Shown here in pieces: positions 4,388-60,375 of a stretch of DNA of 64,000 bases. The notes under the pieces are model-generated. The model saw only the letters and a list, made by a program, of their open reading frames with translations, made no database searches and had not been told where the DNA came from. Numbering within the stretch: the stretch's first letter is position 1; each line of letters begins with the position of its first letter. The stretch lies in IMG/VR virus record IMGVR_UViG_3300042544_001590, positions 143,490-207,489 of that record; one strand, 5' to 3'. Both the position numbers and the translations under genes were made by a program.

Positions 4388-4392
4388 ACTGT

Positions 4393-4415
4393 TATTTAGT
4401 CATAATAATTAAATA
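4393..4415. promoter_or_regulatory. back-to-back T4-type late promoters
   Basis: TATTTA 4393-4398 and TAAATA 4410-4415, each 5 nt from an ATG. Confidence 0.75.
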
Positions 4416-4420
4416 ATGTT

Positions 4421-12772: not shown

Positions 12773-12901
12773 ATGGGTGATTGGATAGCTTTTATTTCAT
12801 TTTGGGTGGTTTTCACAGTTGGATTGATAGTATCAATTTGTGGTATTTTATCATTTTTAATTAAAATTTTAAACAAATTTACTGATTGGGAGAGACGATG
12901 A
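12773..12901 (+). CDS. small membrane protein (not in ORF track)
   Basis: 42 aa MGDWIAFISFWVVFTVGLIVSICGILSFLIKILNKFTDWERR; one TM segment; ATGA-coupled to the clamp gene. Confidence 0.55.
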   Translation: MGDWIAFISFWVVFTVGLIVSICGILSFLIKILNKFTDWERR

Positions 12902-13605
12902 ATTTAAATCTAAAGAAAAAAGAATTTCAATATCTCCTTCAAAGCCTCGCCCAAATCCATGACACGTGTGTTCTGGAACTGAGGGAAGATGGTATCCACG
13001 GGATTGCCTCCAGCGAGGATAATTCCATGTTTGCCCATGCTTATCTGTCAGGAGAGTATGAGGATCAGAATCTCAATCTACCTTCTCTGAAGAAGCTTTC
13101 CAAAGCTTTGGATATGATTTCTTCCGATGATATCAAGCTCAAGCTGAATAATAATCATCTGGAATACAAGAACAAGTCTCTGAAGTTCAAGTATCATCTC
13201 CATGAAGATGGGGTGATCACCAAACCGAAGTTGTCTCTGGAAAAGATTCGTAATTTTGAATACAATCTCCAATTTGATCTGGATTTTGAGTTCCTTTCCA
13301 ATGTTCTCCAAAAATCATCCATCACAAATACCAACAAGCTCTATCTATTTACTGAGAACGATTCTCTGGTGTGGAAGCTGGGGGATGAGACGGTTCCCAA
13401 TAGTGATACTCTGAGCATCGTGGGAGATGAGGTGGATTTTGAATTGGAATCTTTTATTCTAAAGATCGATAATCTAAAGCTGCTGTCCAAGGTATCCAAG
13501 ACGGGAAACATTTTCAAGATCAATTCCAAGCTTGGGGTCGGCTGCATCATCACGAAGAGTGGAGATTTTGAGATGGAATACATTTTATCGAGCCTTAAAA
13601 ACTAG
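12898..13605 (+). CDS. DNA polymerase sliding clamp (gp45-like)
   Basis: 235 aa with two-domain beta/alpha clamp pattern, in replication cluster. Confidence 0.7.
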   Translation: MNLNLKKKEFQYLLQSLAQIHDTCVLELREDGIHGIASSEDNSMFAHAYLSGEYEDQNLNLPSLKKLSKALDMISSDDIKLKLNNNHLEYKNKSLKFKYHLHEDGVITKPKLSLEKIRNFEYNLQFDLDFEFLSNVLQKSSITNTNKLYLFTENDSLVWKLGDETVPNSDTLSIVGDEVDFELESFILKIDNLKLLSKVSKTGNIFKINSKLGVGCIITKSGDFEMEYILSSLKN

Positions 13606-13613
13606 AATACAAT
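13595..13613 (+). promoter_or_regulatory. conserved TTAAAAACTAGA-H-TAnnnT motif, copy 1
   Basis: TTAAAAACTAGAATACAAT; TAG is the clamp stop codon. Confidence 0.7.
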
Positions 13614-13734
13614 GAATGACCTTGAAAAAATATTGGATGATATTTTGGAAATTACCGAAAGGAAATATATCATTCCTGAAATTGAAGATTATTACAACGA
13701 TTTGAAAGAAATTAAACAACGAATTGAAAATTAA
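13612..13734 (+). CDS. small hypothetical protein (not in ORF track)
   Basis: 40 aa MNDLEKILDDILEITERKY... filling the gap. Confidence 0.45.
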   Translation: MNDLEKILDDILEITERKYIIPEIEDYYNDLKEIKQRIEN

Positions 13735-13735
13735 C

Positions 13736-13948
13736 ATGCAACAACACAGATTCAGGATTGAGGAGACTAAAGCAGTCATTGAACAGCTTCAACAAGCACA
13801 GAATAATCTCTATGATGCGCTAATCGATATGATCGAACCAACAGAAGAACAAGAGCCTTGGTTATGGGATTACGTGTTCAACACATACCCCAAGGACAAT
13901 TCGGAATACAACCAGATGGTGGAAAGGGGAATTTACGGTGAGCTATAA
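13736..13948 (+). CDS. hypothetical protein
   Basis: ORF in run of small genes. Confidence 0.55.
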   Translation: MQQHRFRIEETKAVIEQLQQAQNNLYDALIDMIEPTEEQEPWLWDYVFNTYPKDNSEYNQMVERGIYGEL

Positions 13949-14186
13949 CGATATAACTTTGAAAGCAATAAAGACTGGCATCCAGAACAAAGCCTATGAT
14001 GAGGGTTGGGAGCGCATCTTCGCCAAGAAGACCGCTCATGAATGGCTTGAAACAATGCCCGATATTCGGCTGCTTGATCCTGATGGATGGAGATGGGATG
14101 ATGGGGTGACTATGGATACTCCTATCAAATGGTCGGATTTCAATAATCGTTTGAACCACTCAACGCTCACTGGATTGATTAAATAA
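13938..14186 (+). CDS. hypothetical protein
   Basis: 82 aa with LDPDGW motif; GTG start. Confidence 0.55.
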   Translation: MSYNDITLKAIKTGIQNKAYDEGWERIFAKKTAHEWLETMPDIRLLDPDGWRWDDGVTMDTPIKWSDFNNRLNHSTLTGLIK

Positions 14187-14190
14187 GTAA

Positions 14191-14790
14191 ATGCGTCCGT
14201 TTTACGATTTTTATCTAGAGAAATTTTCTGATTTGGGTAAATTATCCCCCGAACAATTGAGAAAAGGTCAGAGACTTGATCCAAACAACCCCGATAACTT
14301 CCAACAGGTGAGCGGGAGGGTGTTTTCTCAAGCCCTTACCAACATCACAAAGAATGATGAATTTCGCCGAACGGTAAATCCAAAGTTTTTCAAGAATATC
14401 AAGAACAATCTCAGTGTTTATAAAGTTGAAGAATATCAGCGCATGAAATGTTTCCTTGGAAAGAACAATTCCAGTGGTTTTGCCATCAAGGATGGGGATG
14501 AATTGGTGTCAGTATTCTCTTCTCAAGAATCTTCTGGTAATGCGCTGGTTCAGGAAGCGATTCGGCAAGGTGCCACACGATTGGATTGTTTTGCCACACA
14601 AGATGAAAACGGTAATATCAAGGATGAGGGTTTATACAGGCTTTATAGTAGGAATGGGTTTGTGATTGACAAAACGCTGAACATGGACGGAGAATATCCT
14701 GTCAAGAATGGGATATCCTACTTCGTGGACGAAAATGGAAATGTTGATCCCACCAATCCTACCGTGGTGATCTTCATGGTTAAAAACTAG
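14191..14790 (+). CDS. GNAT-like domain protein, putative internal head protein
   Basis: ELVSVFS...GNALVQEAIRQGATRLDCF...LYSRNGF; TAAATA (14180)-N5-ATG. Confidence 0.55.
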   Translation: MRPFYDFYLEKFSDLGKLSPEQLRKGQRLDPNNPDNFQQVSGRVFSQALTNITKNDEFRRTVNPKFFKNIKNNLSVYKVEEYQRMKCFLGKNNSSGFAIKDGDELVSVFSSQESSGNALVQEAIRQGATRLDCFATQDENGNIKDEGLYRLYSRNGFVIDKTLNMDGEYPVKNGISYFVDENGNVDPTNPTVVIFMVKN

Positions 14791-14798
14791 AATACAAT
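14780..14798 (+). promoter_or_regulatory. conserved motif, copy 2
   Basis: TTAAAAACTAGAATACAAT-N7-ATG. Confidence 0.7.
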
Positions 14799-14805
14799 TT
14801 AATCA

Positions 14806-15102
14806 ATGAAGATACTTTATCCTGAAAAATATCAAGAAAACGCGCCAAAATCAGAAGATGTTGATTTTGATAATATCGTCAATTTTCACATTGGAAATAA
14901 TTTGTCTGGTTTTTTAGATACTGTTGTGATTGTGGTGGAACACTGTGTAAATGTTCATTATTTGAATTTTGAATCTTGGATTGAAGGAAGGGCGAATACC
15001 ATTTATGTGAAAACATTGGTTGATTGTAGATATCACTCTGATAATCTCAAGTTCTTGATTGAGAAATTTAGAAAAATTGAGGAGGTTTGGAATGAAGGAT
15101 GA
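14806..15102 (+). CDS. hypothetical protein
   Basis: 98 aa AT-rich ORF. Confidence 0.55.
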   Translation: MKILYPEKYQENAPKSEDVDFDNIVNFHIGNNLSGFLDTVVIVVEHCVNVHYLNFESWIEGRANTIYVKTLVDCRYHSDNLKFLIEKFRKIEEVWNEG

Positions 15103-15910
15103 TTTAAACATACGGGAGCTTTACCAAAAGATAATTGAGGAGAGGGCGGCAGCTAGAGGCGTGATCTTGATGGAAAATGTGAAGATTCCTTCCAATAATT
15201 CCAGTCCCGATCAGGTCAATTTTGATGGAAAGTCATATTCTTATGAATTGGGGGACGCTTTTTCCCTCATAGGAGACACACTTTACCATACGGAGAACAC
15301 CCACCCATACATTTTCAATTCACTTTTAAAAATTAAAAACGATCCAAAGGATTTTAAGAGGATATTAAAATCGTATTATGTGGAAATATGTGGAAAATTC
15401 AACAAATCCGATTTGGAATACTTTTTCAATAACCAGAAAGCGGAAAGCATGGGAGATACCAGAATCAACACTCAATCTGGAAGAATCTGGAAAGATATCA
15501 CCTCAACATCCGCTAAAAAGGATGTGTCGGTGGTGGTGTTTTGGTGTAGGGAGAAAGATATCCAACCGGACACGCTTAAAAAAATCAAGAAGTGTTTTAC
15601 TAAAAATGATATTTTTTGGGCTGCAACCGATTCCAAGAATTTCAACCATTTTGGGGATTCTTATCAAGACACTCCATCTGGAGAAATCAAGGAATTGAAA
15701 AGTAAAATATATCCAGAGCTTTCTCACGAAGATATTGTGGATATCCTGATGAGAGCGCATTCAAATTTCAAGATATCTCCCTTTGAGAAGAAGGTGGTGT
15801 GGGAATTCCGAGGAATCAACCCAGAAGATTTGAAAGTTATTGATGGAGGATACCCATCGGTGGCGGAATTCAGGGATAAACAAAAATTTAGCGAAAATTA
15901 TGAAAAATAA
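15092..15910 (+). CDS. hypothetical protein, putative internal head protein
   Basis: Likely ATG 15092; N-terminus IRELYQKIIEE. Confidence 0.6.
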   Translation: MKDDLNIRELYQKIIEERAAARGVILMENVKIPSNNSSPDQVNFDGKSYSYELGDAFSLIGDTLYHTENTHPYIFNSLLKIKNDPKDFKRILKSYYVEICGKFNKSDLEYFFNNQKAESMGDTRINTQSGRIWKDITSTSAKKDVSVVVFWCREKDIQPDTLKKIKKCFTKNDIFWAATDSKNFNHFGDSYQDTPSGEIKELKSKIYPELSHEDIVDILMRAHSNFKISPFEKKVVWEFRGINPEDLKVIDGGYPSVAEFRDKQKFSENYEK

Positions 15911-16559
15911 ATTTGATGAATTGTATGAACAGGTGATTATTGAAAGTGGTCTTTCAAGAGTATGGAGAAAGATTCAAAATCATTCTTCTGGCACCATCAC
16001 GGCTTTTAGGGGTGATGTCCCATATCAGCAGAATATTAGAAATAATAAAAAGATACTTGCTTATCTACAATCTAAAGGATATTCGGTGACATCTATTATG
16101 GGGACATACATTGAAAATTTTAGAGATGAAGAAAAAAAGGAGGAGATTCACGCTAGAAATGCTGGAGGTGATCCATATGATCCCGAAGAAAGACATGTTC
16201 AAGAAAGATCATTTTTAGTAGTAAATGATAGGGTGGAAGGTGATGATGGTGGTAAATTGGCGCACGATCTTTTTAAATTGGGGGTAGCTTTTGATCAGGA
16301 TTCGGTTATGATTATTCCCGTTGGTGGTAATAACGCATATCTGTGGGGAACATCCAAAAGAGAAGAATCGTATCCCGGTTACAATATCAAAGCTCCAGTT
16401 GGTAGTGGTAAATATGGAAAAACATCAGGAGCATTTTTATCTAAGATTAAGGGGCGAGAATTCGCGTTTGAGGCTATCAAATCACCACAAACCATAAATG
16501 GCAAGCGTGGTCAAATGATTTCGTTGAAAGAAGTTAAGAAACAACTCAATGAAATATAA
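15900..16559 (+). CDS. hypothetical protein, putative internal head protein
   Basis: Likely ATG 15900; MKNKFDELYEQVIIE-SGLSR, ITAFR, FDQDSV. Confidence 0.6.
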   Translation: MKNKFDELYEQVIIESGLSRVWRKIQNHSSGTITAFRGDVPYQQNIRNNKKILAYLQSKGYSVTSIMGTYIENFRDEEKKEEIHARNAGGDPYDPEERHVQERSFLVVNDRVEGDDGGKLAHDLFKLGVAFDQDSVMIIPVGGNNAYLWGTSKREESYPGYNIKAPVGSGKYGKTSGAFLSKIKGREFAFEAIKSPQTINGKRGQMISLKEVKKQLNEI

Positions 16560-16950
16560 TATTTTTCTGGACGACATTCGGTTTCCCAAGGATGCTTTTC
16601 TCCAAAAAGAATTGGCATATCTCACGGAATATTCTAAAATTCCTGAAAACGAATGGGTGATCGTGAGGAATTATGAGGATTTTGTGAAAACGATTGAAGA
16701 ACGCGGTATTCCAGCGGCAGCGAGTTTTGATTGTGATTTAAATTCTGAACATTTTAGACATTATGTTAAGGATAGTATTAATTCCGGTATTTATGAATGG
16801 GAAAATTTCAAATCTAAATGTGGAATTCATTGTGCTTTATATTTGAAATCTTTATTGTGTGATGGAGATGACACAAAAGTTTTTATACATAGTGCTAATA
16901 TTATTGGTAGTATGATTATTAGAGAAATGATGAGGGCATATTTATTTTAA
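16549..16950 (+). CDS. receiver-like (cyclic-phosphate processing REC type) domain protein
   Basis: IFLDD.R.P, W.IVRNY, SFD.DL, G..CA, HSAN..G. Confidence 0.65.
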   Translation: MKYNIFLDDIRFPKDAFLQKELAYLTEYSKIPENEWVIVRNYEDFVKTIEERGIPAAASFDCDLNSEHFRHYVKDSINSGIYEWENFKSKCGIHCALYLKSLLCDGDDTKVFIHSANIIGSMIIREMMRAYLF

Positions 16951-17909
16951 ATATTTTTATTTTTTGGGATTAAAATCCATCCTTTATGTATTCCTGTTTT
17001 TGATGGTTTGTTTTCTTTTCCAGCTTTTGCTAAAAAATTAAAATCCAAATTTTTTTCTCTACAAAATTCCGCGACATTATGTATTAAATATTCCTCTCCA
17101 GTGTAAATATTTTTAATAATTCTTTTAGTTTCTTGAAAAGAATCAATATTTTTTATAAATTTTTCATATTTTCTATCTAATCTAATAGATTTTGTAGAAT
17201 CTTTATAAATCCATTCCAAAAATTTGAATGCATCTTTTTGAATTGATATACTACAAAGGTTTACATATTTAGTATAATATATTTCTTGAGTTGTTATCTC
17301 TATGGTTTTTAGATAATCTTTAATAAAAATTAGACATTCTGAAGTGCTTAGAAGATTTATTCTGTATCTGTTATTGATAATAGTAACATTACCATCTCCA
17401 TCAAATATACCCCTAACGAAGTGTGAATAATATTTTTCTTCGATAATTGGAAATTTAAAAGATTTTGATTTATTTTCATCAACACCGTGATTTTTTATAT
17501 ATTGGCAAAATTCTTTAGAATTGACTTGTAAAAATTCTATATCATAGGTTTTTCCTGTACGTTTGTCATATCTATTGATACTTGAAATTGGACTTCCAGA
17601 ATCTATAGCCTTTTTAAATTTTGGTAAAACATCTTTATCCTTTACACCAATAGTTAATTTATAGCCAGATTTTTGAATACATCCATCTGCAACAATAAAA
17701 CCCAACCAGTAAGCTTTTTCGGCAGAATCAATTTTTTCGAAATATTTTATATCTAATGATCTTTTTCTCATAGGTGTTGGAATTCCATTAGAATCTAATA
17801 TTTTTTTGATATGTCTAACTGTTATGTTTAAATTCTTAGAAACCTTACTCAAACTTTGGAGCTTGAGGTATTCATCTATAACTGTTTGATGTTTTATAAA
17901 TTCTTTCAT
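16947..17909 (-). mobile_element. free-standing LAGLIDADG homing endonuclease
   Basis: Two motifs AYWLGFIVADG and HFVRGIFDGDG; AT-rich; opposite strand to neighbours. Confidence 0.85.
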
Positions 17910-17957
17910 AATTATTCGGGTGTATGTTTATACTTAGTCTCCTAATCTAAAAAAACG

Positions 17958-17996
17958 CGTATTATCCGTGATATTATGAAAGAATATCTTGCTTGA
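17958..17996 (+). pseudogene. orphaned 3' end of the REC-like gene
   Basis: Reads RIIRDIMKEYLA*, matching MIIREMMRAYLF* at the end of 16549-16950. Confidence 0.65.
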
Positions 17997-18024
17997 CATC
18001 CAAAATTCTTCATTAAGTATTAAC

Positions 18025-18375
18025 ATGAAGAACAACGTAAGCACACAGGGGTATTTCATCAAGAGACTTAGAGATTCTGGATTCGCTACCATCAAGCTGT
18101 TTGACAATTATGCACAACACGATCCTCGCAAGTGGTCGATCATGGTCGATCCCAATAATACTTCCGTGATCATCACTTGTTACCAGAACAAGGAAGCTGT
18201 GGGTGATGTGATGTTTGAGTTCAATGATGGGGGTAATCGCTTCATTAAGAACTTTAATCTCAAGACGCAGAGCATGGAAATCGTTGTCACCACCCTGATT
18301 GAAAAAGGGGTGGAGCAAATGAATATCAACTCTGAGTATGTAAAGTCTAAGTATGAATATGGCCAAGAAGGATGA
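18025..18375 (+). CDS. hypothetical protein
   Basis: TAAGTA-N5-ATG 18025. Confidence 0.6.
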   Translation: MKNNVSTQGYFIKRLRDSGFATIKLFDNYAQHDPRKWSIMVDPNNTSVIITCYQNKEAVGDVMFEFNDGGNRFIKNFNLKTQSMEIVVTTLIEKGVEQMNINSEYVKSKYEYGQEG

Positions 18376-18676
18376 TGATCAACCGGAGGAAATCTTCAAG
18401 GATGAGCAGGTTTTGGAAGTTCTTCGGGAATCCCTGAAAAAGAAGCTTAGGAATGAGCGTAAGAAAGGTTCTCCACCACTGACAAATGATGCTCTGAAGG
18501 CTATTTTAAAGGAGTTCATGGTTTGTGGGAAACTTTTCGGATATGATCTGGATGGGAATGTCGTGGAAATCGCATTCCACGACAATAAGATGGAGGATAA
18601 TGCCATGCAGAACCTTTTTATTCAGAAATTTGGAGAGTTCATGGCTGGTAGGATGAATATTTTGGATGATTTTTAA
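18359..18676 (+). CDS. hypothetical protein
   Basis: ORF with core-gene codon usage. Confidence 0.6.
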   Translation: MAKKDDDQPEEIFKDEQVLEVLRESLKKKLRNERKKGSPPLTNDALKAILKEFMVCGKLFGYDLDGNVVEIAFHDNKMEDNAMQNLFIQKFGEFMAGRMNILDDF

Positions 18677-18691
18677 AAACTAGATTACCAT
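18673..18691 (+). promoter_or_regulatory. conserved motif, copy 3
   Basis: TTAAAAACTAGATTACCAT-N6-ATG. Confidence 0.7.
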
Positions 18692-18697
18692 CCACGT

Positions 18698-18856
18698 ATG
18701 GGAAATTACAACATATACGAAATCGAAACATTTGACGATAAGTGTCCGAATTGTGGATTGGATATTTACCAATTATTACACGTTGAAGAGTGGGGTAGGA
18801 CTTTTTGTGTCGATTGTTTGGACAGAGAACTTGAAAAATATGATAAACATTTTTAA
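18698..18856 (+). CDS. small zinc-finger protein (not in ORF track)
   Basis: 52 aa with CPNC...CVDC, starting 6 nt after motif copy 3. Confidence 0.6.
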   Translation: MGNYNIYEIETFDDKCPNCGLDIYQLLHVEEWGRTFCVDCLDRELEKYDKHF

Positions 18857-19115
18857 AAAACAAAAGATCAAAAAAGGTGACGTTTACGCAGTCCAAACTG
18901 GTGATTTCGTTGGGCAGCTATTCAATTTCATTAAAAAAGATGGGGATGATTACGTGTTTCTCTCCGTTCCAGATATAAAAATCCAAAGGGTTCCGATAGA
19001 AAAATTTGACTTTGGCAAAGAACATGAGATTATCGAATTCGTTGAACATCTCCCAAAAAATATCCGCCGCGTTATCGAAGCCCAATACGAAGTCCTTGCA
19101 AAAGAGGATGATTGA
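18840..19115 (+). CDS. hypothetical protein
   Basis: Likely ATG 18840. Confidence 0.55.
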   Translation: MINIFKKQKIKKGDVYAVQTGDFVGQLFNFIKKDGDDYVFLSVPDIKIQRVPIEKFDFGKEHEIIEFVEHLPKNIRRVIEAQYEVLAKEDD

Positions 19116-20130
19116 GTTTCCCACGGATTATGTGGTGTCCAAATTCTACGAATATGGATATAAAGTTTCTTTTAGCTCCCATAATGGAAATTATAATTGC
19201 TGTTGCCCCATATGCAGAGAGGGTAAAAGCTGGGGCAAAAAGAAAAGATGTTTCTACATTCCCGAAAATGACAATATCTTCTGTCATAATTGCGGTTGGT
19301 CGTCCAAACCTTTCAAATGGATTAAGGAAGTGTCGGGACTGTCATTCAATCAGATGGTGGATGAAATCGAGAAAGGTAATTACGGGATGATAAATGTCAT
19401 GGACATGGAGGATAAGCAGGAAAAGCCCAAATCAGCATCCCTACCCATTGATAGTATCAACTTATTTGATAAAACCCAGACGGATTACTACAAGAACAAT
19501 AAGATCGTCCAAAAAGCTCTGGCTTACATCAAGGAAAGACGGCTGGATACCGCTGTAAATCGACCAGATGCCTTCTACATCTCTTTGAAGGATGAGAAGC
19601 ATGATAAGCGTCTGGTGATCCCCTTCAAGGACGAGACGGGCAAGATTGTTTATTACCAAAGCAGACGATTGATGGATGATGAATCTCCTTCTTATCTCTC
19701 AAAAGATGGGGGTGACAAGAGTATCTTTGGAATTGAGCGCATATCCCCCGATCTGGATAAGGTTTTCCTTATTGAAGGTCCATTGGATGCCTGTTTTGTT
19801 AAAAATGGGCTTGGTCTGGGGGGTATTACTAAGGGAGATCAGCTTTTCACCGCATATCAACAGGAACAGATGGATGGTCTGAAGTTCTTTGAGCGTATTT
19901 GGGTGTTGGACTCGCAGTGGATAGATGAAACGGCGCGAAAGAAGACCCTAAAGCTCATAGAAATGGGGGAAAAGGTGTTTATCTGGCCTGAATACGATGG
20001 TAAACGCTTTAAAGACATAAATGCCGTGTGTATGGCTTATGAAATGAACGAATATCCCACAGATTTGATTTTAAAAAATAGCTGCAAAGGTTTGGCAGCT
20101 ACGGTAAAAATGAAAATGATTAAAAACTAG
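19108..20130 (+). CDS. DNA primase (T4 gp61-like)
   Basis: Zinc ribbon CPIC...CHNC, RLVIPF, YQSR, TOPRIM IEGPLD, VLD, KDIN. Confidence 0.92.
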   Translation: MIEFPTDYVVSKFYEYGYKVSFSSHNGNYNCCCPICREGKSWGKKKRCFYIPENDNIFCHNCGWSSKPFKWIKEVSGLSFNQMVDEIEKGNYGMINVMDMEDKQEKPKSASLPIDSINLFDKTQTDYYKNNKIVQKALAYIKERRLDTAVNRPDAFYISLKDEKHDKRLVIPFKDETGKIVYYQSRRLMDDESPSYLSKDGGDKSIFGIERISPDLDKVFLIEGPLDACFVKNGLGLGGITKGDQLFTAYQQEQMDGLKFFERIWVLDSQWIDETARKKTLKLIEMGEKVFIWPEYDGKRFKDINAVCMAYEMNEYPTDLILKNSCKGLAATVKMKMIKN

Positions 20131-20138
20131 AATATACT
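20120..20138 (+). promoter_or_regulatory. conserved motif, copy 4
   Basis: TTAAAAACTAGAATATACT-N6-ATG; TAG is the primase stop codon. Confidence 0.7.
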
Positions 20139-20144
20139 ACGATT

Positions 20145-20477
20145 ATGGAAATTGAAATTTTTGACCAACAAATTATTCAAAAAAAGTGGAAAAATTATGA
20201 TGCTCATACGCAAGATTATTTACCACATATTGGTTACGGTGCGTCTGGTACATATGACTCTATAACAAAAAAGGGAACGATTAGATCGTATATGAAAAAA
20301 TGTAAGGAACTTGAAAAGGCAGGTTACAAAAATTTAAAATTTTGTAACGGGGGCGATGACGACTGGTTGGTGGTAGATCACGATGCCAAAGAATTTGGAT
20401 TTTTTGAAGATTACGCTCCCTCTTTAGAAAGGGCTGTGAAATTTGACAACCTCACCACACTTTGGAATAATCATTGA
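20145..20477 (+). CDS. hypothetical protein
   Basis: 110 aa ORF after motif copy 4. Confidence 0.55.
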   Translation: MEIEIFDQQIIQKKWKNYDAHTQDYLPHIGYGASGTYDSITKKGTIRSYMKKCKELEKAGYKNLKFCNGGDDDWLVVDHDAKEFGFFEDYAPSLERAVKFDNLTTLWNNH

Positions 20478-20887
20478 GACTTTTTAGCAGTCATAAACGA
20501 TTGTTGAAGAGCAGCAAGATCAGAAGCAATGCGACCAATCTTCACTTGTTGATTCTTCAGATTGCCCAACATCGACTCAGGATTGGCGGTAGCCAGAACG
20601 CTCTGAATGCTGTTTGGTTGATCACCATTGAGATAACCAAGGAACTTATCAATATTTGCATTCCACTTATCAACAACACTAACCATTTGCTCATTCTGAC
20701 GAGCCATAGCATCCCCAATCTCATCAACAGCGGATGGATCAACTTCCATATCCACATCATAATCATCCATGGCAACATCGTCGTCTAAGGACATCTCAGC
20801 AGCATCGCGCTCCAAATCAGGATCGATGTCAAGTTGGGGAGCTTCTTGGAGAATACGGAGGAATTTAGCGTGGAATTTATTAGCCAT
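20471..20887 (-). CDS. acidic hypothetical protein, putative head core protein
   Basis: Late promoter; N-terminus KFLRILQE-A. Confidence 0.6.
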   Translation of the reverse strand: MANKFHAKFLRILQEAPQLDIDPDLERDAAEMSLDDDVAMDDYDVDMEVDPSAVDEIGDAMARQNEQMVSVVDKWNANIDKFLGYLNGDQPNSIQSVLATANPESMLGNLKNQQVKIGRIASDLAALQQSFMTAKKSQ

Positions 20888-20892
20888 ACCTT

Positions 20893-20915
20893 TATTTAGT
20901 CAAAAGTGTTAAATA
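20893..20915. promoter_or_regulatory. back-to-back late promoters
   Basis: TATTTA 20893 and TAAATA 20910, each 5 nt from an ATG. Confidence 0.75.
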
Positions 20916-20920
20916 TCTAT

Positions 20921-21271
20921 ATGTCTGCTTCAAATTCTCCCTATTCCACCGCAATCGCCTCTGGTGCCATTGATTTCGACTTTGAAAGTTCGTTGAATCC
21001 TTCGGAACAGATGCGAAAATACAAGACGGATGAGAAAGAAGCCAAGGCTCCCCACACTTTACCGTTTGAATTCGGAGAATTGCCCCAACAAATGGCAAAT
21101 ATCGTGGATAATGCGTTTGCAGCGTCCAAAAATCTGGAAAATCTCCTGAAAATGGAGGAATTCCAGAAAAACGGGGAACTCATCAAGCTCAAGGGTAATC
21201 TGGAGAAGATGATCATGTATTTGATGCAGAACGGGGATAAAACGCTTGAGAAATTCACGATTGGTGTTTAA
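20921..21271 (+). CDS. hypothetical late protein
   Basis: TAAATA-N5-ATG 20921. Confidence 0.6.
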   Translation: MSASNSPYSTAIASGAIDFDFESSLNPSEQMRKYKTDEKEAKAPHTLPFEFGELPQQMANIVDNAFAASKNLENLLKMEEFQKNGELIKLKGNLEKMIMYLMQNGDKTLEKFTIGV

Positions 21272-21286
21272 AAACTAGACTACAAT
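21268..21286 (+). promoter_or_regulatory. conserved motif, copy 5
   Basis: TTAAAAACTAGACTACAAT-N5-ATG. Confidence 0.7.
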
Positions 21287-21291
21287 AGGGT

Positions 21292-21462
21292 ATGACTTCA
21301 AAAACACTTCAAGACTTCCCCAGAGATGAGCAACTTGCGATTCTGAAAGATATCTGTAACAAAATTTATATCGCTCGGAACATTTCAATGTCTCCTGACA
21401 CGATTATTGAGAATCTGGAAGAGATTGATAGGCTTTTTCGAGATAACGAAAATTATAATTGA
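21292..21462 (+). CDS. small hypothetical protein (not in ORF track)
   Basis: 56 aa MTSKTLQDFPRDEQLAILKDIC... Confidence 0.55.
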   Translation: MTSKTLQDFPRDEQLAILKDICNKIYIARNISMSPDTIIENLEEIDRLFRDNENYN

Positions 21463-21879: not shown

Positions 21880-22418
21880 AAATTATGAACGAAAAAACAA
21901 AAAGAATAGGATTGCAAATATTGGGAGGAATTGGCATTTCCCTCGGATTGGCATTCGGGTTGACTACAAATGAGACAGATTTCCTACGGTATTTCGTATT
22001 ATCTATGATTGGATGTGTAGTGGGAATGTTCTGGTGGGACAACCGCAAGCAAAAGGATGACAGGGTTGCCGATTTAGAGAACCAGCTTGAGAAAAAGCAG
22101 ACTGATGAGCGTGTGATTGCTCTGGAAAAGATGCTTCAGGAAGCGGATGGCGTGATGGTTGAACAGGAGGATGTGATTAAAAACTACGAGAGTATGTTGG
22201 ACGAAGCGACTGTTAGATTTCCCTGCAATTGTGGACAGAACATGTTTGAGGGGATATTCAAACCGGAGGAGGAATATGAAGTGAAATGTGATGCCTGTAA
22301 CAACACGTATTCCGTCACTCTAAAGATTGATAGCATACTAATTACCGAACCAATTGAAGACTTGAACATAGATAATCTAATTAAAACAAAACTGAATGAT
22401 AACAATAAAAACAAATAA
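21876..22418 (+). CDS. membrane protein with coiled coil and zinc ribbon
   Basis: Two hydrophobic segments, heptad region, CNC...CDAC. Confidence 0.6.
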   Translation: MKIMNEKTKRIGLQILGGIGISLGLAFGLTTNETDFLRYFVLSMIGCVVGMFWWDNRKQKDDRVADLENQLEKKQTDERVIALEKMLQEADGVMVEQEDVIKNYESMLDEATVRFPCNCGQNMFEGIFKPEEEYEVKCDACNNTYSVTLKIDSILITEPIEDLNIDNLIKTKLNDNNKNK

Positions 22419-40740: not shown

Positions 40741-40745
40741 ACTAT

Positions 40746-40768
40746 TATTTAGAACAAATGACTAAATA
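40746..40768. promoter_or_regulatory. back-to-back late promoters
   Basis: TATTTA 40746 and TAAATA 40763, each 5 nt from an ATG. Confidence 0.75.
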
Positions 40769-40773
40769 ATCCT

Positions 40774-45125: not shown

Positions 45126-46229
45126 ATGCCAAAGATTTCCCAATTAACATCTGCAACATTACCTATTGTTGGTAATGAGGTGGCTATCATCAATCAAAAT
45201 GGAACCACTTATTCAAGTGCTTTAAGTAATTTTATTGGGGGTGGATCGAACGTGTCATCCTTATCTTCAAATTGGCAGAACACTTACACCACATTTTCCT
45301 CAAATTCTGCCAATTATGCAAAGGTTAATGTCAATAATAATTTTTCATCTACCCAAACGTTCACCACAGGTTCAATAAATGTCGGAGGATTTCCTTTATC
45401 TGCGACAGTGAGTAATAGTTTGTTTGGTGGTAATCTCGCAGGTTTCGGTGCTACGTGTGCATGTTTCTCCAATTTCTTTGGTTATAACGCAGGTAACGGT
45501 GCCACATGCGCATCCAATTCCAATTTCTTTGGTCAAGGCGCGGGTTACAATACCACAAACGCATATAGCTCCAATTTCTTTGGTTCAAACGCAGGTTTCG
45601 GTGCCACAAACGCATCCAATTCCAATTTCTTTGGTTCAAACACAGGTTTCGGTGCCACAAGCGCATGTAATTCCAATTTCCTTGGTTCAAACGCAGGTTA
45701 CGGTGCCACAAACGCATCCAATTCCAATTTCCTTGGTAGATACTCAGGTAACGGTGCCACAAACGCATCCAATTCCAATTTCCTTGGTTCAAACGCAGGT
45801 TTCGATGCCACAAACGCATCCAACTCCAATTTCCTTGGTAGATACGCAGGTAACGGTGCCACAAACGCATCCAACTCCAATTTCCTTGGTAGATACGCAG
45901 GTTACTATGCCACATACGCATCATTCTCCAATTTCCTTGGTCAAGGCGCAGGTAACGGTGCCACAAACGCATGTCACTCCATATTCATTGGTTCAAACGC
46001 AGGTAACGGTGCCACAAACGCATGTCACTCCATATTCATTGGTTATAACGCAGGTTTCGGTGCCTCTCTGTCAGCTTCAATCGCCCTTGGCTCTTGTGCT
46101 ATCCCCACATCACACAATCAATTAGTGTTGGGGTCGTCAGCATACCCACTATCAACTGTTAATAGCGGCAACTGTTTAGTTGTAAACATAAATGGAACTA
46201 TGAAGAAAATAGCGTTGCTTTCCGTTTAA
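45126..46229 (+). CDS. fibre/adhesin-like protein with 17-aa beta-roll repeats
   Basis: TAAATA-N5-ATG; MPKISQL N-terminus; SNF(F/L)GxxAGxxATxAxx repeats. Confidence 0.7.
   Translation: MPKISQLTSATLPIVGNEVAIINQNGTTYSSALSNFIGGGSNVSSLSSNWQNTYTTFSSNSANYAKVNVNNNFSSTQTFTTGSINVGGFPLSATVSNSLFGGNLAGFGATCACFSNFFGYNAGNGATCASNSNFFGQGAGYNTTNAYSSNFFGSNAGFGATNASNSNFFGSNTGFGATSACNSNFLGSNAGYGATNASNSNFLGRYSGNGATNASNSNFLGSNAGFDATNASNSNFLGRYAGNGATNASNSNFLGRYAGYYATYASFSNFLGQGAGNGATNACHSIFIGSNAGNGATNACHSIFIGYNAGFGASLSASIALGSCAIPTSHNQLVLGSSAYPLSTVNSGNCLVVNINGTMKKIALLSV
45471..46065 (+). repeat. about 12 x 51-bp coding tandem repeat
   Basis: Units start at 45471 + 51n. Confidence 0.95.
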
Positions 46230-50202: not shown

Positions 50203-51075
50203 ATGTCCTCTGGTTGTCCAACAATTCCTTTATCGTGTCTAACACCTGAAAACATCTTTGCTGGTGTCTATCGCCCCAATTGTGGGGGATTTGCCGATCC
50301 ATCCAACTTTCAGGCGGAAAGAGCCATATTCAATTCCCAATTCGGGGAGCTTATCAACAATTATGGGGTGGAGATTGATTATTTTGTCAATACTTTCAAT
50401 CCCAAGGCGATGAACTCCATCTATGGGGAACATACGCTCATGTATTGGCTTGGTCCAACAACCATCAAGGCATATATCCAGATGGAAAACGGTTCCCCCA
50501 TATATGCTCTGGCTGGTATGGATTCTCCCGATACCCTGACACTATATTTACATATTGATGACTTCAACACCAAGTTTGAAGGACTCAGCATTTTTGATGG
50601 ATTTTTATACGATGAATCAAATAATAAGATTTTAACGGAAACTGGGGAACCGATCATTGTTGATAGGGACGATGGGCCATTTGTTCCCGAACCTAAATCA
50701 CAGGATAAGATTCGTGTAACACCATTTGGTTGCGATAGACCAAATGGTAGGGGAGCCAAGATATTTGAGGTTACGGAAGCCATGGATGAGGATCAGAGCG
50801 AACTCAATCCTGCGATGGGACATTATGTGTGGAGACTGAAAGCTGTCCGTAGCGAACATAACTTCACCACCAACGAGCCAAGGGAGGAATATAACCAGCA
50901 GATTGCGGACAATTCCTATTTTGGTAAGCTCTCCTCTGTCATGTTCCCCGAACTCTCAAGTGTGTTGGATGATAACAAGGTATATACGCAAAATTCCGAT
51001 GAAATCGTGCAAAGGGACGTGTTTCCTCCATCTACGGGAGGAAGTGATGGGAGTGTTTACGGTAATTATTTCTAA
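50203..51075 (+). CDS. neck/head closure protein (gp14-like)
   Basis: ELI..YG....Y, YGE, EP...D.I, IFEV, YVWRLK; precedes terminase. Confidence 0.6.
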   Translation: MSSGCPTIPLSCLTPENIFAGVYRPNCGGFADPSNFQAERAIFNSQFGELINNYGVEIDYFVNTFNPKAMNSIYGEHTLMYWLGPTTIKAYIQMENGSPIYALAGMDSPDTLTLYLHIDDFNTKFEGLSIFDGFLYDESNNKILTETGEPIIVDRDDGPFVPEPKSQDKIRVTPFGCDRPNGRGAKIFEVTEAMDEDQSELNPAMGHYVWRLKAVRSEHNFTTNEPREEYNQQIADNSYFGKLSSVMFPELSSVLDDNKVYTQNSDEIVQRDVFPPSTGGSDGSVYGNYF

Positions 51076-51084
51076 ATAATACAA

Positions 51085-54809: not shown

Positions 54810-54854
54810 ATTGCTGTTTAGGAAATTTTTGGCGGGGATTTGCTAAATAGTAAT
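54810..54854 (+). promoter_or_regulatory. RNA hairpin enclosing the sheath late promoter
   Basis: About 20-bp stem with G-U pairs and one mismatch; TAAATA 54844-54849, ATG 54855. Confidence 0.6.
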
Positions 54855-57327: not shown

Positions 57328-59154
57328 ATGAATGGGCTTATTGAAGATAACAACACTAAAGAGTATATTTTAAATCGTAAAAATAATGGAATGCCCTTAT
57401 CGAAATCTTTATTTAAAAGAAAATTTCAAAGTATCTTAAATGAAATAAATGATCATAATAACAAATACCTCTTAAAAAATGATAAATTTTCACAAGAAGT
57501 GTATAATTGGATATTTGATATTAAAGAAAATCCAAAATGTCCGCTAACTGGATTGGATTTAAAATTTGATTATCATAAATTTAAATACAGACCAGTTAGA
57601 GGGAAAGGCAAACATTTACCAGACGTTCAACAAATTATAACAAGCAAAAGATTGAAAAATTTTAGTTATAAGAAGTTGTATGAGTCTAAAAGAAATGTTG
57701 AGCCAGTTGAAATATCATTTGAAAAAATAAGAAAATTATTAAATAAAAATTTCAAAAATATTACTAATTTTGGGGGGTTTACCACCAAATTCTTATCAAG
57801 ATTTCCAGAATATTATAATTATGTGGATTCGGATCAATTTTTACCATGGTGTGAATCCTTTCAGGAAAAAATATATTGTATTATCAACAATATTCCAGAA
57901 TCAATAGGTAAAAAATACATGGGATTTGGAAAGGGATATTCCAAATATGCTGATTGGGTGGAGTATCGTAGAAGTAAAGCTGCCAAAAAAATGAATGCTG
58001 CCGTAGATTACGACAAAGATAAGACCATATTAGAACTTAATAAAAGAATCGAAGAGTTAAAATTAGCCAATAAAGCAACCAATAATTTACGACAATCTTT
58101 TATGGGAACCGATCCAAATTTAGTTAGAAGTATTTTTACCCATACCTCAGAGTATCCAGATATAAAATTCAGCAATAGGGTATTTTTATTACTCAATGGG
58201 CAACCAGTTCCAGATAAAGGTTATATAAAACCAGTATTTTTCAGTTTGGATAAAGGATATAGTATGAGATTTTCATCTCAAAATGGAACTTCCAAACCGG
58301 AACAAGAATTATTTGATTGGTTGGGGGGATACATACCAAATCTAAAAAAAGATAGAACGGTGTTAAATGGTAGAGAAATAGATGTATTTTCTGAAGAGAA
58401 TGGTGTAGGAATTGAATATGATGGTGTATATTGGCATAATTATGAAATAGTGGGTGATAAATCATTATTTTTGAAAAATCAATTGGCGAAATCAAAAAAC
58501 ATAAGATTATTACACATTTTTGAAACTGAATGGCTACAAAAACAGGATATTGTTAAGAGTATTATTCTTTCTAAATTTAATATTTTTGAAAATAAATATC
58601 ATGCTAGAAAATGTGATATTAGAACGGTTGATAGTAAAATTTGTGTTGATTTTTTAAACGAAAATCATTTACAAGGTAAAGATAATTCAAAATATAAATA
58701 TGGACTCTATCATAAGGATGAGTTGGTTTCGGTGATGACGTTTGGGCAACGAACCATTACGAAAAATCCACAAATGGAATTGATTAGATTTTGCAATAAA
58801 AAAAATACTACAGTTATTGGAGGTGCTGGTAAATTATTCAAACATTTCATTAAAACGCATAATCCAACATATGTTAAGACATACGCAAACGCCAGAATAA
58901 GTGATGGTGATATGTATAAAAAATTAGGATTCTCTTTCAAACACCACTCACCCCCAAATTATTGGTATTATAAACCAGAAGCAGCCAAAAAGATCAAATT
59001 GATGCATCGAAGTGGTTTTCAAAAACATAGGCTGTCTGGGATTCTTGAAAGATTTGACAAGGGTAAAACGGAATGGGAAAACATGAGCGATCATGGATAT
59101 AAGAAAATCTACGACTGTGGCAACCTTGTTTTTGAATATCAAAGAGAAAATTGA
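57328..59154 (+). mobile_element. Hef-like putative homing endonuclease with C-terminal GNAT/Mom-like domain
   Basis: S..E, EID, IEYDG.YWH, HIFE.EW nuclease motifs; then NHLQG, ELIRF, GGA.KL, Y..LGF, IYDCG; AT-rich; between sheath and tube. Confidence 0.7.
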
Positions 59155-59175: not shown

Positions 59176-59745
59176 ATGGCGACCACAATTGAAAACTTTT
59201 TTAATCAGGCTTCTCAAAAGCAATTTGCAAGGGACTTCCTATTCCGTGTTAAACAAATCAGTGTTACTGGTCTTTCCTTAAATGGGGAGACTGATCTGAT
59301 TTATGCAAGAACCGCAACTTTTCCGGGACGAAACATCCAGAATAAGCAAGTCAACTTCAGTGGTCAAACATTCAACCTACCGGGAAAATCTGAATATCCC
59401 GGAGCAGAAGCATGGTCTATTGAATTCTATGTTGATCAAGACCTTGATATTCGTTCCAAATTGGAAGCTGCATCGAGAGTTTTATTCGATAATGAAACGA
59501 CCACTGGTAACATTTGTATGCCGGGATATGAATCCGTGATTACTCTTGATGTTCTACAAATCCCATGTCAACGTGGATCGAATGTTACATCTGGGGGGGA
59601 ACTTCAAGTTGGTAAAACAATTGAACTGATTGGTGCTTCCCTTAGAGACATTGGTGAAATTTCTTATGAGATTGCTGACGGAACGGGAGAAGTTAAAACC
59701 TTCAATGCGACTTTTGCATATCATTTCTACAAGAAATTTACGTGA
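59176..59745 (+). CDS. tail tube protein (gp19-like)
   Basis: R.FLFRV, PGR, W.I.FY.D, F.ATFAY; TAAATA-N5-ATG. Confidence 0.8.
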   Translation: MATTIENFFNQASQKQFARDFLFRVKQISVTGLSLNGETDLIYARTATFPGRNIQNKQVNFSGQTFNLPGKSEYPGAEAWSIEFYVDQDLDIRSKLEAASRVLFDNETTTGNICMPGYESVITLDVLQIPCQRGSNVTSGGELQVGKTIELIGASLRDIGEISYEIADGTGEVKTFNATFAYHFYKKFT

Positions 59746-59772
59746 GCTTAATCTTACGGATTAAGTATCTAC

Positions 59773-60375
59773 ATGGCTGGTCCTCAAATTAACGATTTCC
59801 TACAGGCATTTTCTGGTGATGCCAAATACTGCCTATCAATACCAGTATTATGGACTGTATCCATTGATGGTGTCACGGAATCGGCAATCAATAGCGTTCT
59901 ATCGGATGCTGGACAGAAATGGCAAGCTAAGATCGCTCCCAATGCCATGACGAAGAGCGGCACGATCCTCCCAGCCCAAGCAGTTACAATCCCACAAGAA
60001 TCATCCAATTTCTCCGCAATGGTAGCGGGGAATTCGTATGGTGGTTTCCTGCCGGGGTATGCTATGGATTCCCGTGCCGATTTCCTCTCCCGCAGCTTCT
60101 CCATCAACTTTCTAGAAACGAGACAGGATTTGGAACATGAGTATTTTCGTCCTTGGCAGATCGCCATTGGTATCAAGGGTTTGGTTGAGCGTGGAGTGAA
60201 TCTGAAGTCCACCATCACCGTGAAACAATACACCAATGATGGACAGCTTAGGAAAGGATACCGATTCAAAAGGGCATTCCCCACCGCTGTTGAGGGATTC
60301 ACCATGGATTATAATAACACGGATTATCCAATCAAGAGTGTGACATTTGCTTGTGAAAATTATGAGCAATTATGA
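59773..60375 (+). CDS. tail tube paralog/baseplate-tube initiator (gp54/gp19-like)
   Basis: INFLET, FRPW, AFPT, VTF; TAAGTA-N5-ATG. Confidence 0.65.
   Translation: MAGPQINDFLQAFSGDAKYCLSIPVLWTVSIDGVTESAINSVLSDAGQKWQAKIAPNAMTKSGTILPAQAVTIPQESSNFSAMVAGNSYGGFLPGYAMDSRADFLSRSFSINFLETRQDLEHEYFRPWQIAIGIKGLVERGVNLKSTITVKQYTNDGQLRKGYRFKRAFPTAVEGFTMDYNNTDYPIKSVTFACENYEQL

Follow-up and report, generated by a model that had tools for sequence, protein, structure and literature searches.

A repeated promoter-like box that most likely serves as the main gene-start signal of an uncultured T4-like lake phage

The repeated element examined here is most likely the main gene-start signal (promoter) of an uncultured, distantly T4-like lake phage, in whose 207-kb genome it occurs about 120 times on the same strand directly in front of start codons, supplies the stop codon of the gene before it, and marks the points at which small genes are swapped between related phages. 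The window, that is, the whole 64,000-nucleotide stretch of DNA that was analyzed (IMG/VR record IMGVR_UViG_3300042544_001590, positions 143,490 to 207,489), holds only 5 of these copies. The genome-wide consensus is wTAAAAACTA(G/A)n-n-tAnaaT-N5-C-ATG, in which the hexamer carries the two hallmark positions of a sigma-70 -10 element and the A of the ATG, or a conserved CA, lies exactly 7 nt downstream.

The observation behind the original prediction, five copies of a 12-mer directly before a -10-like hexamer, is confirmed. All five copies of TTAAAAACTAGA-N-TAnnnT are found on the + strand at window positions 13595, 14780, 18673, 20120, and 21268, against 0 in 100 dinucleotide shuffles, and the stop codon of the preceding ORF lies inside the 12-mer in all of them. 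An ATG follows the hexamer after 7, 6, 6, and 5 nt at copies 2 to 5. Copy 1 (13595-13613, +, hexamer TACAAT) contains the TAG stop (13603-13605) of the sliding-clamp gene (12886-13605, +, with the true ATG probably near 12898), is not followed by a properly spaced ATG that opens a real ORF, and is a synteny breakpoint in 8 relatives. Copy 2 (14780-14798, +) contains the TAG stop (14788-14790) of ORF 14191-14790, with CA at 14804-14805 and the ATG at 14806 opening a 98-aa ORFan (14806-15102, +) predicted to be expressed with a 1-nt leader. Copy 3 (18673-18691, +, hexamer TACCAT) contains the TAA stop (18674-18676) of ORF 18353-18676, and the ATG at 18698, which lies 7 nt after the hexamer, opens a 52-aa ORFan (18698-18856, +) predicted to be leaderless. 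Copy 4 (20120-20138, +, hexamer TATACT) contains the TAG stop (20128-20130) of a primase-like ORF (19024-20130, +) and precedes the ATG at 20145 of a 110-aa ORFan (20145-20477, +), also predicted to be leaderless. Copy 5 (21268-21286, +, hexamer TACAAT) contains the TAA stop (21269-21271) of ORF 20906-21271 and precedes the ATG at 21292 of a 56-aa ORFan (21292-21462, +) predicted to be expressed from it.

The three proteins whose frame ends on the TAG terminate in LKN*, VKN*, and IKN*, in agreement with the shared KN C-termini originally noted for a clamp, a GNAT-like protein, and a primase. Of these identities the clamp is confirmed (phrog_223, E 1e-8), whereas the "GNAT-like" protein only matches a family of unknown function and the primase rests on weak DnaG-type matches below Pfam cut-offs. 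The 12-mer, described as invariant, is so only among these five copies and reads wTAAAAACTA(G/A)(A/C/G) genome-wide, and a near-copy at 22177 is conserved coding sequence and not a site.

A scan of the whole genome identified 41 exact and 86 one-mismatch copies of the 12-mer, 85 forward and 1 reverse, while the reversed-pattern control gave 5 and 5. The core AAAAACTA occurs 120 times on the + strand and 5 times on the - strand, and the one exact reverse copy precedes a minus-strand gene at the correct offset. Among the 120 copies, position 2 of the hexamer is A in 115 and position 6 is T in 114, with a weaker first T (75/120). The region upstream of the box carries no information at -35, TTGACA is present in only 2 copies, and there is no TG at -15/-14 (T at -15 in 0/120, G at -14 in 13/120). 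The ATG lies exactly 7 nt after the hexamer in 74/120 copies. At the position expected for a start, C is found in 89/120 and A in 105/120, and CA is kept there in 20 of the 37 sites whose ATG lies elsewhere, against a background of 6.7%; these are sequence counts only, as no RNA run was found to hold this phage. In 90 of 97 cases the upstream ORF ends inside the box, on its TAA or TAG. Relatives (the genomes G1, G3, G5, and others) hold 17-83 copies with the same strand bias and the same +23 ATG, and 95 of the 97 IMG/VR stretches that hold the 19-mer belong to the same clade.

The same geometry relative to the ATG is observed for two other promoter classes of the genome, namely 11 exact TTGACA-N16/17-TAnnnT-N5-7-ATG promoters and 56 T4-late-like TAAATA promoters, the latter accompanied by a gp55-like late sigma factor. 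Shine-Dalgarno (SD)-like motifs are no more frequent than chance (5/87 and 28/277 against 12% at random positions). Together with the -10-like signal about 10 bp before the start codon, this satisfies the sequence criterion for leaderless genes (PMC3160421), a consequence of the spacing that the original prediction missed and that extends to all promoter classes of the phage. Of the genes without a promoter, 82/142 overlap or abut the upstream stop. The first 40 nt of the predicted mRNAs are less structured than controls (-2.66 against -4.73 kcal/mol, p 9e-13).

We therefore favor, with fairly good confidence, the reading that the motif is the core of the dominant promoter class of this phage lineage. 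In this view, RNA polymerase holoenzyme reads the tAnaaT hexamer as a sigma-70-type -10 element at -12 to -7, the 12-bp box at -25 to -14 replaces the missing -35 element, and transcription starts 7 nt after the hexamer at a conserved C(-1)A(+1), which in most copies is the A of the ATG, so that the mRNAs would be leaderless or carry 1-3 nt of leader. With no SD sites in use, a gene would be translated either from a 5'-terminal AUG or by coupling to the stop of the gene before it, which would explain why nearly every small gene has its own promoter. As the genes are packed end to end, the upstream ORF would run into the promoter and end on its built-in stop, producing the shared KN C-termini. 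The abundance, orientation, hexamer profile, spacing, stop-codon overlap, and breakpoints are shown by the sequences, whereas promoter activity, the start site, leaderless translation, and a lineage-specific factor that reads the box, most likely a phage-encoded or virion-delivered protein, are inferred.

The interpretation offered by the original prediction, a third, middle-type promoter class recognized by a phage activator or sigma factor next to the -10 or, alternatively, an integron-like recombination site, is partly supported. The promoter reading has strong but indirect support, and the box does lie next to the -10 (1 bp away), unlike a MotA box. However, it is not a minor third class but by far the most numerous promoter of the genome, and middle-type timing and a phage activator or sigma factor remain conjecture. 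Searches of the complete genome for MotA (PF09158) and AsiA (PF09010), which left out the MotA N-terminal domain family, gave no match at E <= 10, and a T7-type RNA polymerase, a second sigma-70-family or gp55-type protein, and HTH hits under TTGACA promoters were all negative.

This lack of a candidate reader leaves open, as a tentative alternative, that the box is read by the unmodified host holoenzyme, for example as a spacer, curvature, or UP-like element with its A5 tract; for an unidentified host this cannot be excluded. These would then be true early promoters that need no phage factor. The copies do sit in front of about 115 tiny ORFans in a hyperplastic region, where T4 places its early promoters (PMC2839356), and the two copies with a perfect TTGACA 16 bp upstream of the hexamer (genome 22022 and 71831) suggest that the box is compatible with sigma region 4 binding. 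On the other hand, the canonical TTGACA-N16 promoters indicate that the host sigma factor reads a normal -35, yet about 115 box promoters lack one and lack TGn. Twelve nearly invariant base pairs in a region that holoenzyme does not normally read base-specifically point to a dedicated reader. The motif is also confined to one phage clade and is not enriched in five candidate host genomes, where it is rarer than the control pattern.

One observation at odds with the favored start site is that tRNA-Met (genome 59643) and tRNA-Arg (59738) begin immediately after the hexamer (exactly 1 nt after it), and a start 7 nt downstream would truncate them. This could reflect initiation right after the hexamer, as at a T7-style contiguous promoter of about 19 bp, or from an overlapping TAG(A/C)nT read as the -10 (TAGAAT or TAGCnT overlaps the box in most copies), giving 5-6-nt leaders on mRNAs and tRNAs that start at their mature 5' end. 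We consider this unlikely, as no phage RNA polymerase was found and T4-like phages use the host enzyme, the alternative hexamer has T at its last position in only 75/120 copies against 114/120 for the downstream one, CA is conserved at +7 from the downstream hexamer, and other tRNAs (Leu 59071, Met 72695) fit the rule of hexamer, 6 nt, then 5' end. A signal acting only in polycistronic RNA, such as a cleavage or processing site, a gene-end signal, or an A-rich enhancer of SD-independent translation, appears still less likely. The motif would be transcribed if upstream transcripts read through, no terminators lie between genes, and it is A-rich and just before start codons in a genome without SD sites. 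However, the A(2)/T(6) profile and the CA at a fixed 7 nt are signatures of transcription initiation, the other two promoter classes share the spacing, and exact 12-mer conservation is not needed for an unstructured leader.

Whether synteny breaks at the motif had been named beforehand as a test, and it does. At four of the five window copies, which are exact breakpoints, relatives keep the upstream gene and the motif but carry unrelated downstream genes: besides copy 1, the downstream gene is replaced at copy 3 in the relatives L096, L074, and L088, at copy 4 in L063 and L081, and at copy 5 in L063, L096, L081, and G3, the 110-aa and 56-aa ORFans being the variable cassettes at the latter two. 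Overall, 25 of 77 alignment-block ends lie at the motif against 3.7 expected (p 1e-14), although gene boundaries in general are breakpoint-prone, as 28% of gene starts without the motif also have a block end nearby, against 48% with it. At 97-99% identity, the cassette order is A-B-C-D-E in the genome designated G0 and A-C-X-D-B-E in G3, with junctions in the motif, and insertion X is flanked by a 125-nt direct repeat. Neighboring promoters are more alike than random pairs. The recombination alternative is thus also partly right, but a motif that is primarily an integron-like recombination site or selfish repeat, with an incidental promoter-like appearance, is very unlikely. No tyrosine or serine recombinase was detected (PF00589 and PF00239, no match at E <= 1), the motif is asymmetric with no attC-like hairpin or inverted repeat, and strict co-orientation with genes and the fixed distance to the ATG are not explained by such a role. 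The homology at the junctions extends variably beyond the motif (32 to 125 nt), as expected for homologous rather than site-specific exchange. We infer that, as a by-product, about 120 near-identical 20-35-bp promoters give homologous recombination a place to act, with promoter-plus-gene cassettes inserted, replaced, and reordered between relatives.

If the prediction holds, the phage shows how far a genome can be compacted when transcription start and translation start coincide, a cassette being 19 bp of promoter that also ends the previous gene, followed directly by an ORF. It would provide a new, very information-rich box whose reader could be a new way of redirecting bacterial RNA polymerase, at a position different from MotA/AsiA, and would extend modular shuffling of the promoter-early stem-loop (PeSL) type to a deep-branching T4-like clade without terminator stem-loops. 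Practically, the motif allows near-perfect start-codon annotation of more than 100 tiny ORFs per genome in this abundant group of lake phages, and the complete lack of SD sites is a usable clue to the host. A bolder reading, which we regard as somewhat less likely than not, is that a whole lineage of T4-like phages runs its entire expression program on leaderless transcripts, with all three promoter classes placing the start on the A of the ATG and some tRNAs starting at their mature 5' end, so that every non-coupled gene would need its own promoter. The dominant class would then depend on an undescribed factor reading a box at a position used by no known activator or sigma-appropriation system, and the same promoter would serve at once as stop codon, transcription start, translation start, and recombination joint of a minimal mobile gene cassette.

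Among known systems, T4 middle promoters likewise combine a host-type -10 with a phage-specific box that replaces the -35 element, in a phage that uses the host polymerase through sigma appropriation by AsiA and MotA (PMC2988021). However, the MotA box, (a/t)(a/t)(a/t)TGCTTtA, is unrelated in sequence to wTAAAAACTAGa and lies 12 +/- 1 bp from the -10 (centered at -30) rather than 1 bp (centered near -19.5). There are about 60 copies of it against about 120 here, where no MotA or AsiA homologue was found and the transcripts are predicted to be leaderless. Extended -10 (TGn) promoters are also -35-independent with extra information directly upstream of the -10, but positions -15/-14 are here G/A and A/C/G and the conserved stretch is 12 bp, not 2. 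T4 late promoters (TATAAATA; gp55, gp33, gp45) correspond to the separate TAAATA class of this phage (at -12 to -7 of 56 ATGs), whereas the box promoters carry an ordinary TAnnnT hexamer and precede small accessory genes, not structural ones. Leaderless middle and late transcripts of Thermus phage phiYS40, and the "-10 adjacent to ORF" pattern of Deinococcus-Thermus and Actinobacteria, provide a precedent for a -10 a few bp before the start codon, so that the start site coincides with the AUG, and for a phage relying largely on leaderless mRNAs (PMC3594737 citing Sevostyanova 2007; PMC12340547; PMC3160421), but here all three promoter classes, early-type included, show the pattern, on sequence evidence alone, in a T4-like phage with a 12-bp box accompanying the -10. 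Finally, the PeSLs of T4-type phages share a repeated promoter cassette in hyperplastic regions of small ORFans (here 65 copies lie in 50-68 kb with a median spacing of 237 bp, and the downstream ORFs have no family), with indels, replacements, and reordering between close relatives having their junctions in the repeat, and the repeat-flanked insertion fits the mini-circle model (PMC2839356, PMC4122927); no back-joints were seen in the material at hand, which was limited to assembled contigs of lake metagenomes. They differ in that no stem-loop or terminator half adjoins the motif (MFE of the upstream 52 nt -8.5 against -7.5 for controls, strong hairpins in 7/113 against 21/600, terminator scan 20 against 16.6 expected), the promoter lacks a -35 element, and the repeat contains the upstream gene's stop codon and abuts the next ATG.

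The pattern TTAAAAACTAGA-N-TAnnnT was found five times in the window, always on the + strand, at 13595, 14780, 18673, 20120 and 21268, while none was found in 100 dinucleotide-preserving shuffles. In each copy the stop codon of the preceding ORF lies inside the 12-mer, being TAG in three copies and TAA in two, and the three proteins read in the TAG frame end in KN, as the original prediction had stated. An ATG that opens an ORF of 52-110 codons follows the hexamer by 5-7 nt at four copies. Copy 1 has no such ATG; it is followed at window 13612-14186 by three short ORFs in successively shifted frames, and since relatives carry two different intact genes at this place, it looks like a decayed or truncated cassette. 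Copies with two mismatches are at chance level in the window (17 against 12.2 expected), and the one at 22177 is conserved coding sequence. The observation of the five copies is confirmed, and it is greatly extended by the analysis of the complete record.

The window is the last 64 kb of a 207,489-bp virus record from lake-water metagenomes. The T4-like genes identified include gp32, a T4-type large terminase, tail sheath, gp6-like baseplate protein, portal, gp23-like capsid protein, DnaB-like helicase, sliding clamp, ribonucleotide reductase and a gp55-like late sigma factor, while a search for a T7-type phage RNA polymerase found none. The terminase (TerL) and the capsid protein (MCP) are at most 37% and 34% identical, respectively, to those of any cultured phage, which places this phage in a deep, uncultured T4-like lineage. 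Attempts to identify the host gave no assignment: the closest cellular relatives of a phage sugar dehydratase are scattered over many phyla, neither WhiB nor ribosomal protein S21 was found, and the motif is not enriched in acI, Pelagibacter and three other genomes. The presence of a canonical TTGACA -35 argues against Bacteroidota, although the lack of SD sequences would fit them.

Over the whole genome there are 41 exact copies of the 12-mer and 86 with at most one mismatch, 85 forward and 1 reverse, whereas the reversed control pattern gives 5 and 5. The core AAAAACTA occurs 120 times on + and 5 times on -, and the single exact reverse copy precedes a minus-strand gene at the correct offset. 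Nearly all copies lie at 7.5-73.6 kb and 157-165 kb of the genome, with 65 copies in 50-68 kb at a median spacing of 237 bp, that is, about one per tiny gene. Box subtypes cluster along the genome, CTAGA being dominant at 7-47 kb, CTAAA at 50-60 kb and CTAGC at 60-67 kb, which could reflect local gene conversion or sub-classes with different regulation.

Aligned on the core, the copies give the consensus wTAAAAACTA(G/A)(a/c/g)-n-tAnaaT-N5-C-ATG. Nothing is conserved upstream of the box, so there is no -35 element, and there is no TG at -15/-14. The hexamer has the profile of a sigma-70-family -10 element, with A at position 2 in 115/120 and T at position 6 in 114/120, position 1 being weaker. 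The ATG lies exactly 7 nt after the hexamer in 74 copies and 3 nt further in 16. Among the 37 good copies whose ATG is not at that point, 20 still have CA there, against a background of 6.7%, so that a pyrimidine-purine pair is fixed relative to the hexamer independently of the start codon. This is the appearance expected of a transcription start site, although it is inferred from sequence alone: searches of sequencing runs for this phage identified only DNA runs that contain it, and RNA runs from the same study as one of these, or found through related proteins, yielded no transcripts.

The rest of the genome agrees with this arrangement. Eleven promoters with an exact TTGACA, a 16-17-bp spacer and TAnnnT place their hexamer 5-7 nt before an ATG; they stand in front of DNA polymerase, thymidylate synthase, glycosyltransferases and other genes, with ATGs at window 5172, 52884 and 54247 and at genome 139914, 102700(-), 81388(-), 79674(-) and others, and form a third class next to the box and late types. 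Fifty-six genes, mostly structural, have the T4-late type sequence (c/t)TAAATAat with TAAATA at -12 to -7 of the ATG (for example at window 51072-51084 and 54842-54854), including the terminase, sheath, baseplate, portal and capsid genes, which implies leaderless late mRNAs; the matching gp55-like sigma factor is at genome 132842-133291. At window 40741-40773 and 4388-4420, back-to-back divergent late promoters (attatttag ... ctaaataat) fill the whole 33-nt gap between oppositely oriented genes. A late-type promoter is also found for ORF 45126-46229 of the window, which contains a 51-bp tandem repeat of 11.7 copies (83% matches) at 45467-46064 whose copy register varies against the relative G3.

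SD-like sequences are no more frequent than at random positions, and the GGGAGAG that precedes the likely ATG of the clamp gene (about 12898, within window 12880-12900) is one of the very few in the genome. Of 142 genes without any promoter motif, 82 overlap or abut the stop codon of the gene before them, and the first 40 nt after the predicted starts are A-rich and much less structured than controls. We infer that this phage translates either from 5'-terminal AUGs or by coupling, which would make a promoter in front of every independent gene a necessity. What the analysis establishes directly is the abundance, orientation, spacing and conservation of the motif and its coincidence with stop codons and synteny breakpoints, whereas promoter activity, the position of the transcription start, leaderless translation and the existence of a dedicated reader are inferences from these patterns.

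Thirteen phage tRNA genes are present, and an Rfam search of the 40-80 kb region found only tRNAs. Two of them do not readily fit a start 7 nt downstream, since tRNA-Met and tRNA-Arg (genome 59643 and 59738, within 59643-59814) begin directly after a standard box-promoter hexamer. Either they are made from upstream promoters and then processed, or an overlapping TAGCnT hexamer is used there and initiation falls on the mature 5' end. Several others, including Leu at 59071 and Met at 72695, do fit the rule of hexamer, 6 nt, then mature 5' end, and this hints that tRNAs too may be transcribed without a 5' leader.

Of 97 copies with a long ORF running into them, 57 ORFs end on the TAA of the box and 33 on the TAG or TAA at CTAG/CTAA, and 28 of 364 predicted proteins end in KN. 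In the relative G1 the box reads CTAC in most copies, so the TAG is not essential. The stops look like a consequence of packing genes against an A/T-rich promoter that closes two of the three frames, and do not look like a function of their own.

The 19-mer occurs in 97 IMG/VR stretches, all but two of which share DNA with this phage or its relatives. Five large relatives hold 17-72 copies of the 9-mer TAAAAACTA on their main strand, with the same strand bias, and in G1 and G3 the 8-base core AAAAACTA occurs 83 and 41 times and keeps the ATG at +23. At window copies 13595, 18673, 20120 and 21268 the relatives keep the upstream gene and the motif, then continue with unrelated genes. Against G3 (85% identity), 25 of 77 alignment-block ends in motif-bearing regions lie within -10 to +40 of a motif start, against 3.7 expected (p 1e-14), although part of this is a general gene-boundary effect, as 48% of gene starts with the motif have a block end nearby against 28% without it. 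The clearest case is genome 27.3-31.5 kb, where at 97-99% identity the cassette order is A-B-C-D-E here and A-C-X-D-B-E in G3, and every junction lies in a roughly 32-nt stretch made of box, hexamer and ATG. Insertion X (1,032 nt; G3 162546-163577) is flanked by a 125-nt direct repeat that contains a motif copy, 124/125 identical, which fits the footprint of a single crossover with a circular intermediate. Within X, each of three ORFs is preceded by the repeat ACGAACACGAAACGAACATT instead of the box promoter, a different, CA-rich leader type. Neighbouring promoters resemble each other more than random pairs.

The alternative raised in the original prediction, that the motif is a recombination site for integron-like shuffling of small gene cassettes, is also supported by these data, as a by-product of homology rather than as an integron; no integrase or resolvase and no hairpin was found. 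Contigs of four lake DNA runs showed no joints at the motifs; the only joint was a 404-nt skip inside an endonuclease gene, where a contig of one lake sample skips 17042-17447 of the window. This gene (window 16947-17909, minus strand) is one of several homing-endonuclease-like genes (GIY-YIG/NUMOD3 and HNH/Mom-like paralogues), the others being at window 57328-59154 and at genome 15368-16186, 88887-90572 and 103757-105208.

The protein that would read the box is not identified by our searches. The coexistence of canonical TTGACA promoters means that the host sigma factor reads a normal -35, and a class of about 115 promoters with neither -35 nor TGn, but with 12 nearly invariant bp at a predicted -25 to -14, therefore most likely needs a dedicated factor. 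Searches for the MotA C-terminal domain, AsiA, a T7-type RNAP, Sigma70_r2, gp55 paralogues, and Pfam or PHROG hits among proteins behind TTGACA promoters were all negative, except that Sigma70_r2 returned the gp55-like protein, the only sigma-like protein found. The box is confined to this clade and is not enriched in the five cellular genomes tested. We favour a phage-encoded or virion-delivered factor, and regard recognition by the host holoenzyme alone as possible but less likely. The interpretation in the original prediction, a promoter class recognised by a phage activator or sigma factor next to the -10, is thus supported in part: the promoter reading is well supported by indirect evidence, without any RNA data, while the phage factor remains a hypothesis.

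A literature search found no paper describing the motif in a phage-promoter context, but each of the features that it combines has a known counterpart. As a phage-specific box next to a -10 element it can be compared with T4 middle promoters, but the solution of T4, a MotA box 12 +/- 1 bp from the -10 together with AsiA (PMC2988021), is excluded by sequence, by position and by the absence of any match to the MotA C-terminal domain or AsiA. Inferring leaderless genes from a -10 signal about 10 bp before the start codon is an established approach (PMC3160421, PMC12340547), and a phage that relies on leaderless transcripts has a precedent in Thermus phage phiYS40 (PMC3594737). The rearrangements match PeSL-mediated modular shuffling in T4-type phages (PMC2839356, PMC4122927), except that the terminator stem-loop is missing. 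Relative to these box plus -10 promoters, PeSL-type cassettes and leaderless expression, the architecture of the present element is unusually extreme and internally consistent.
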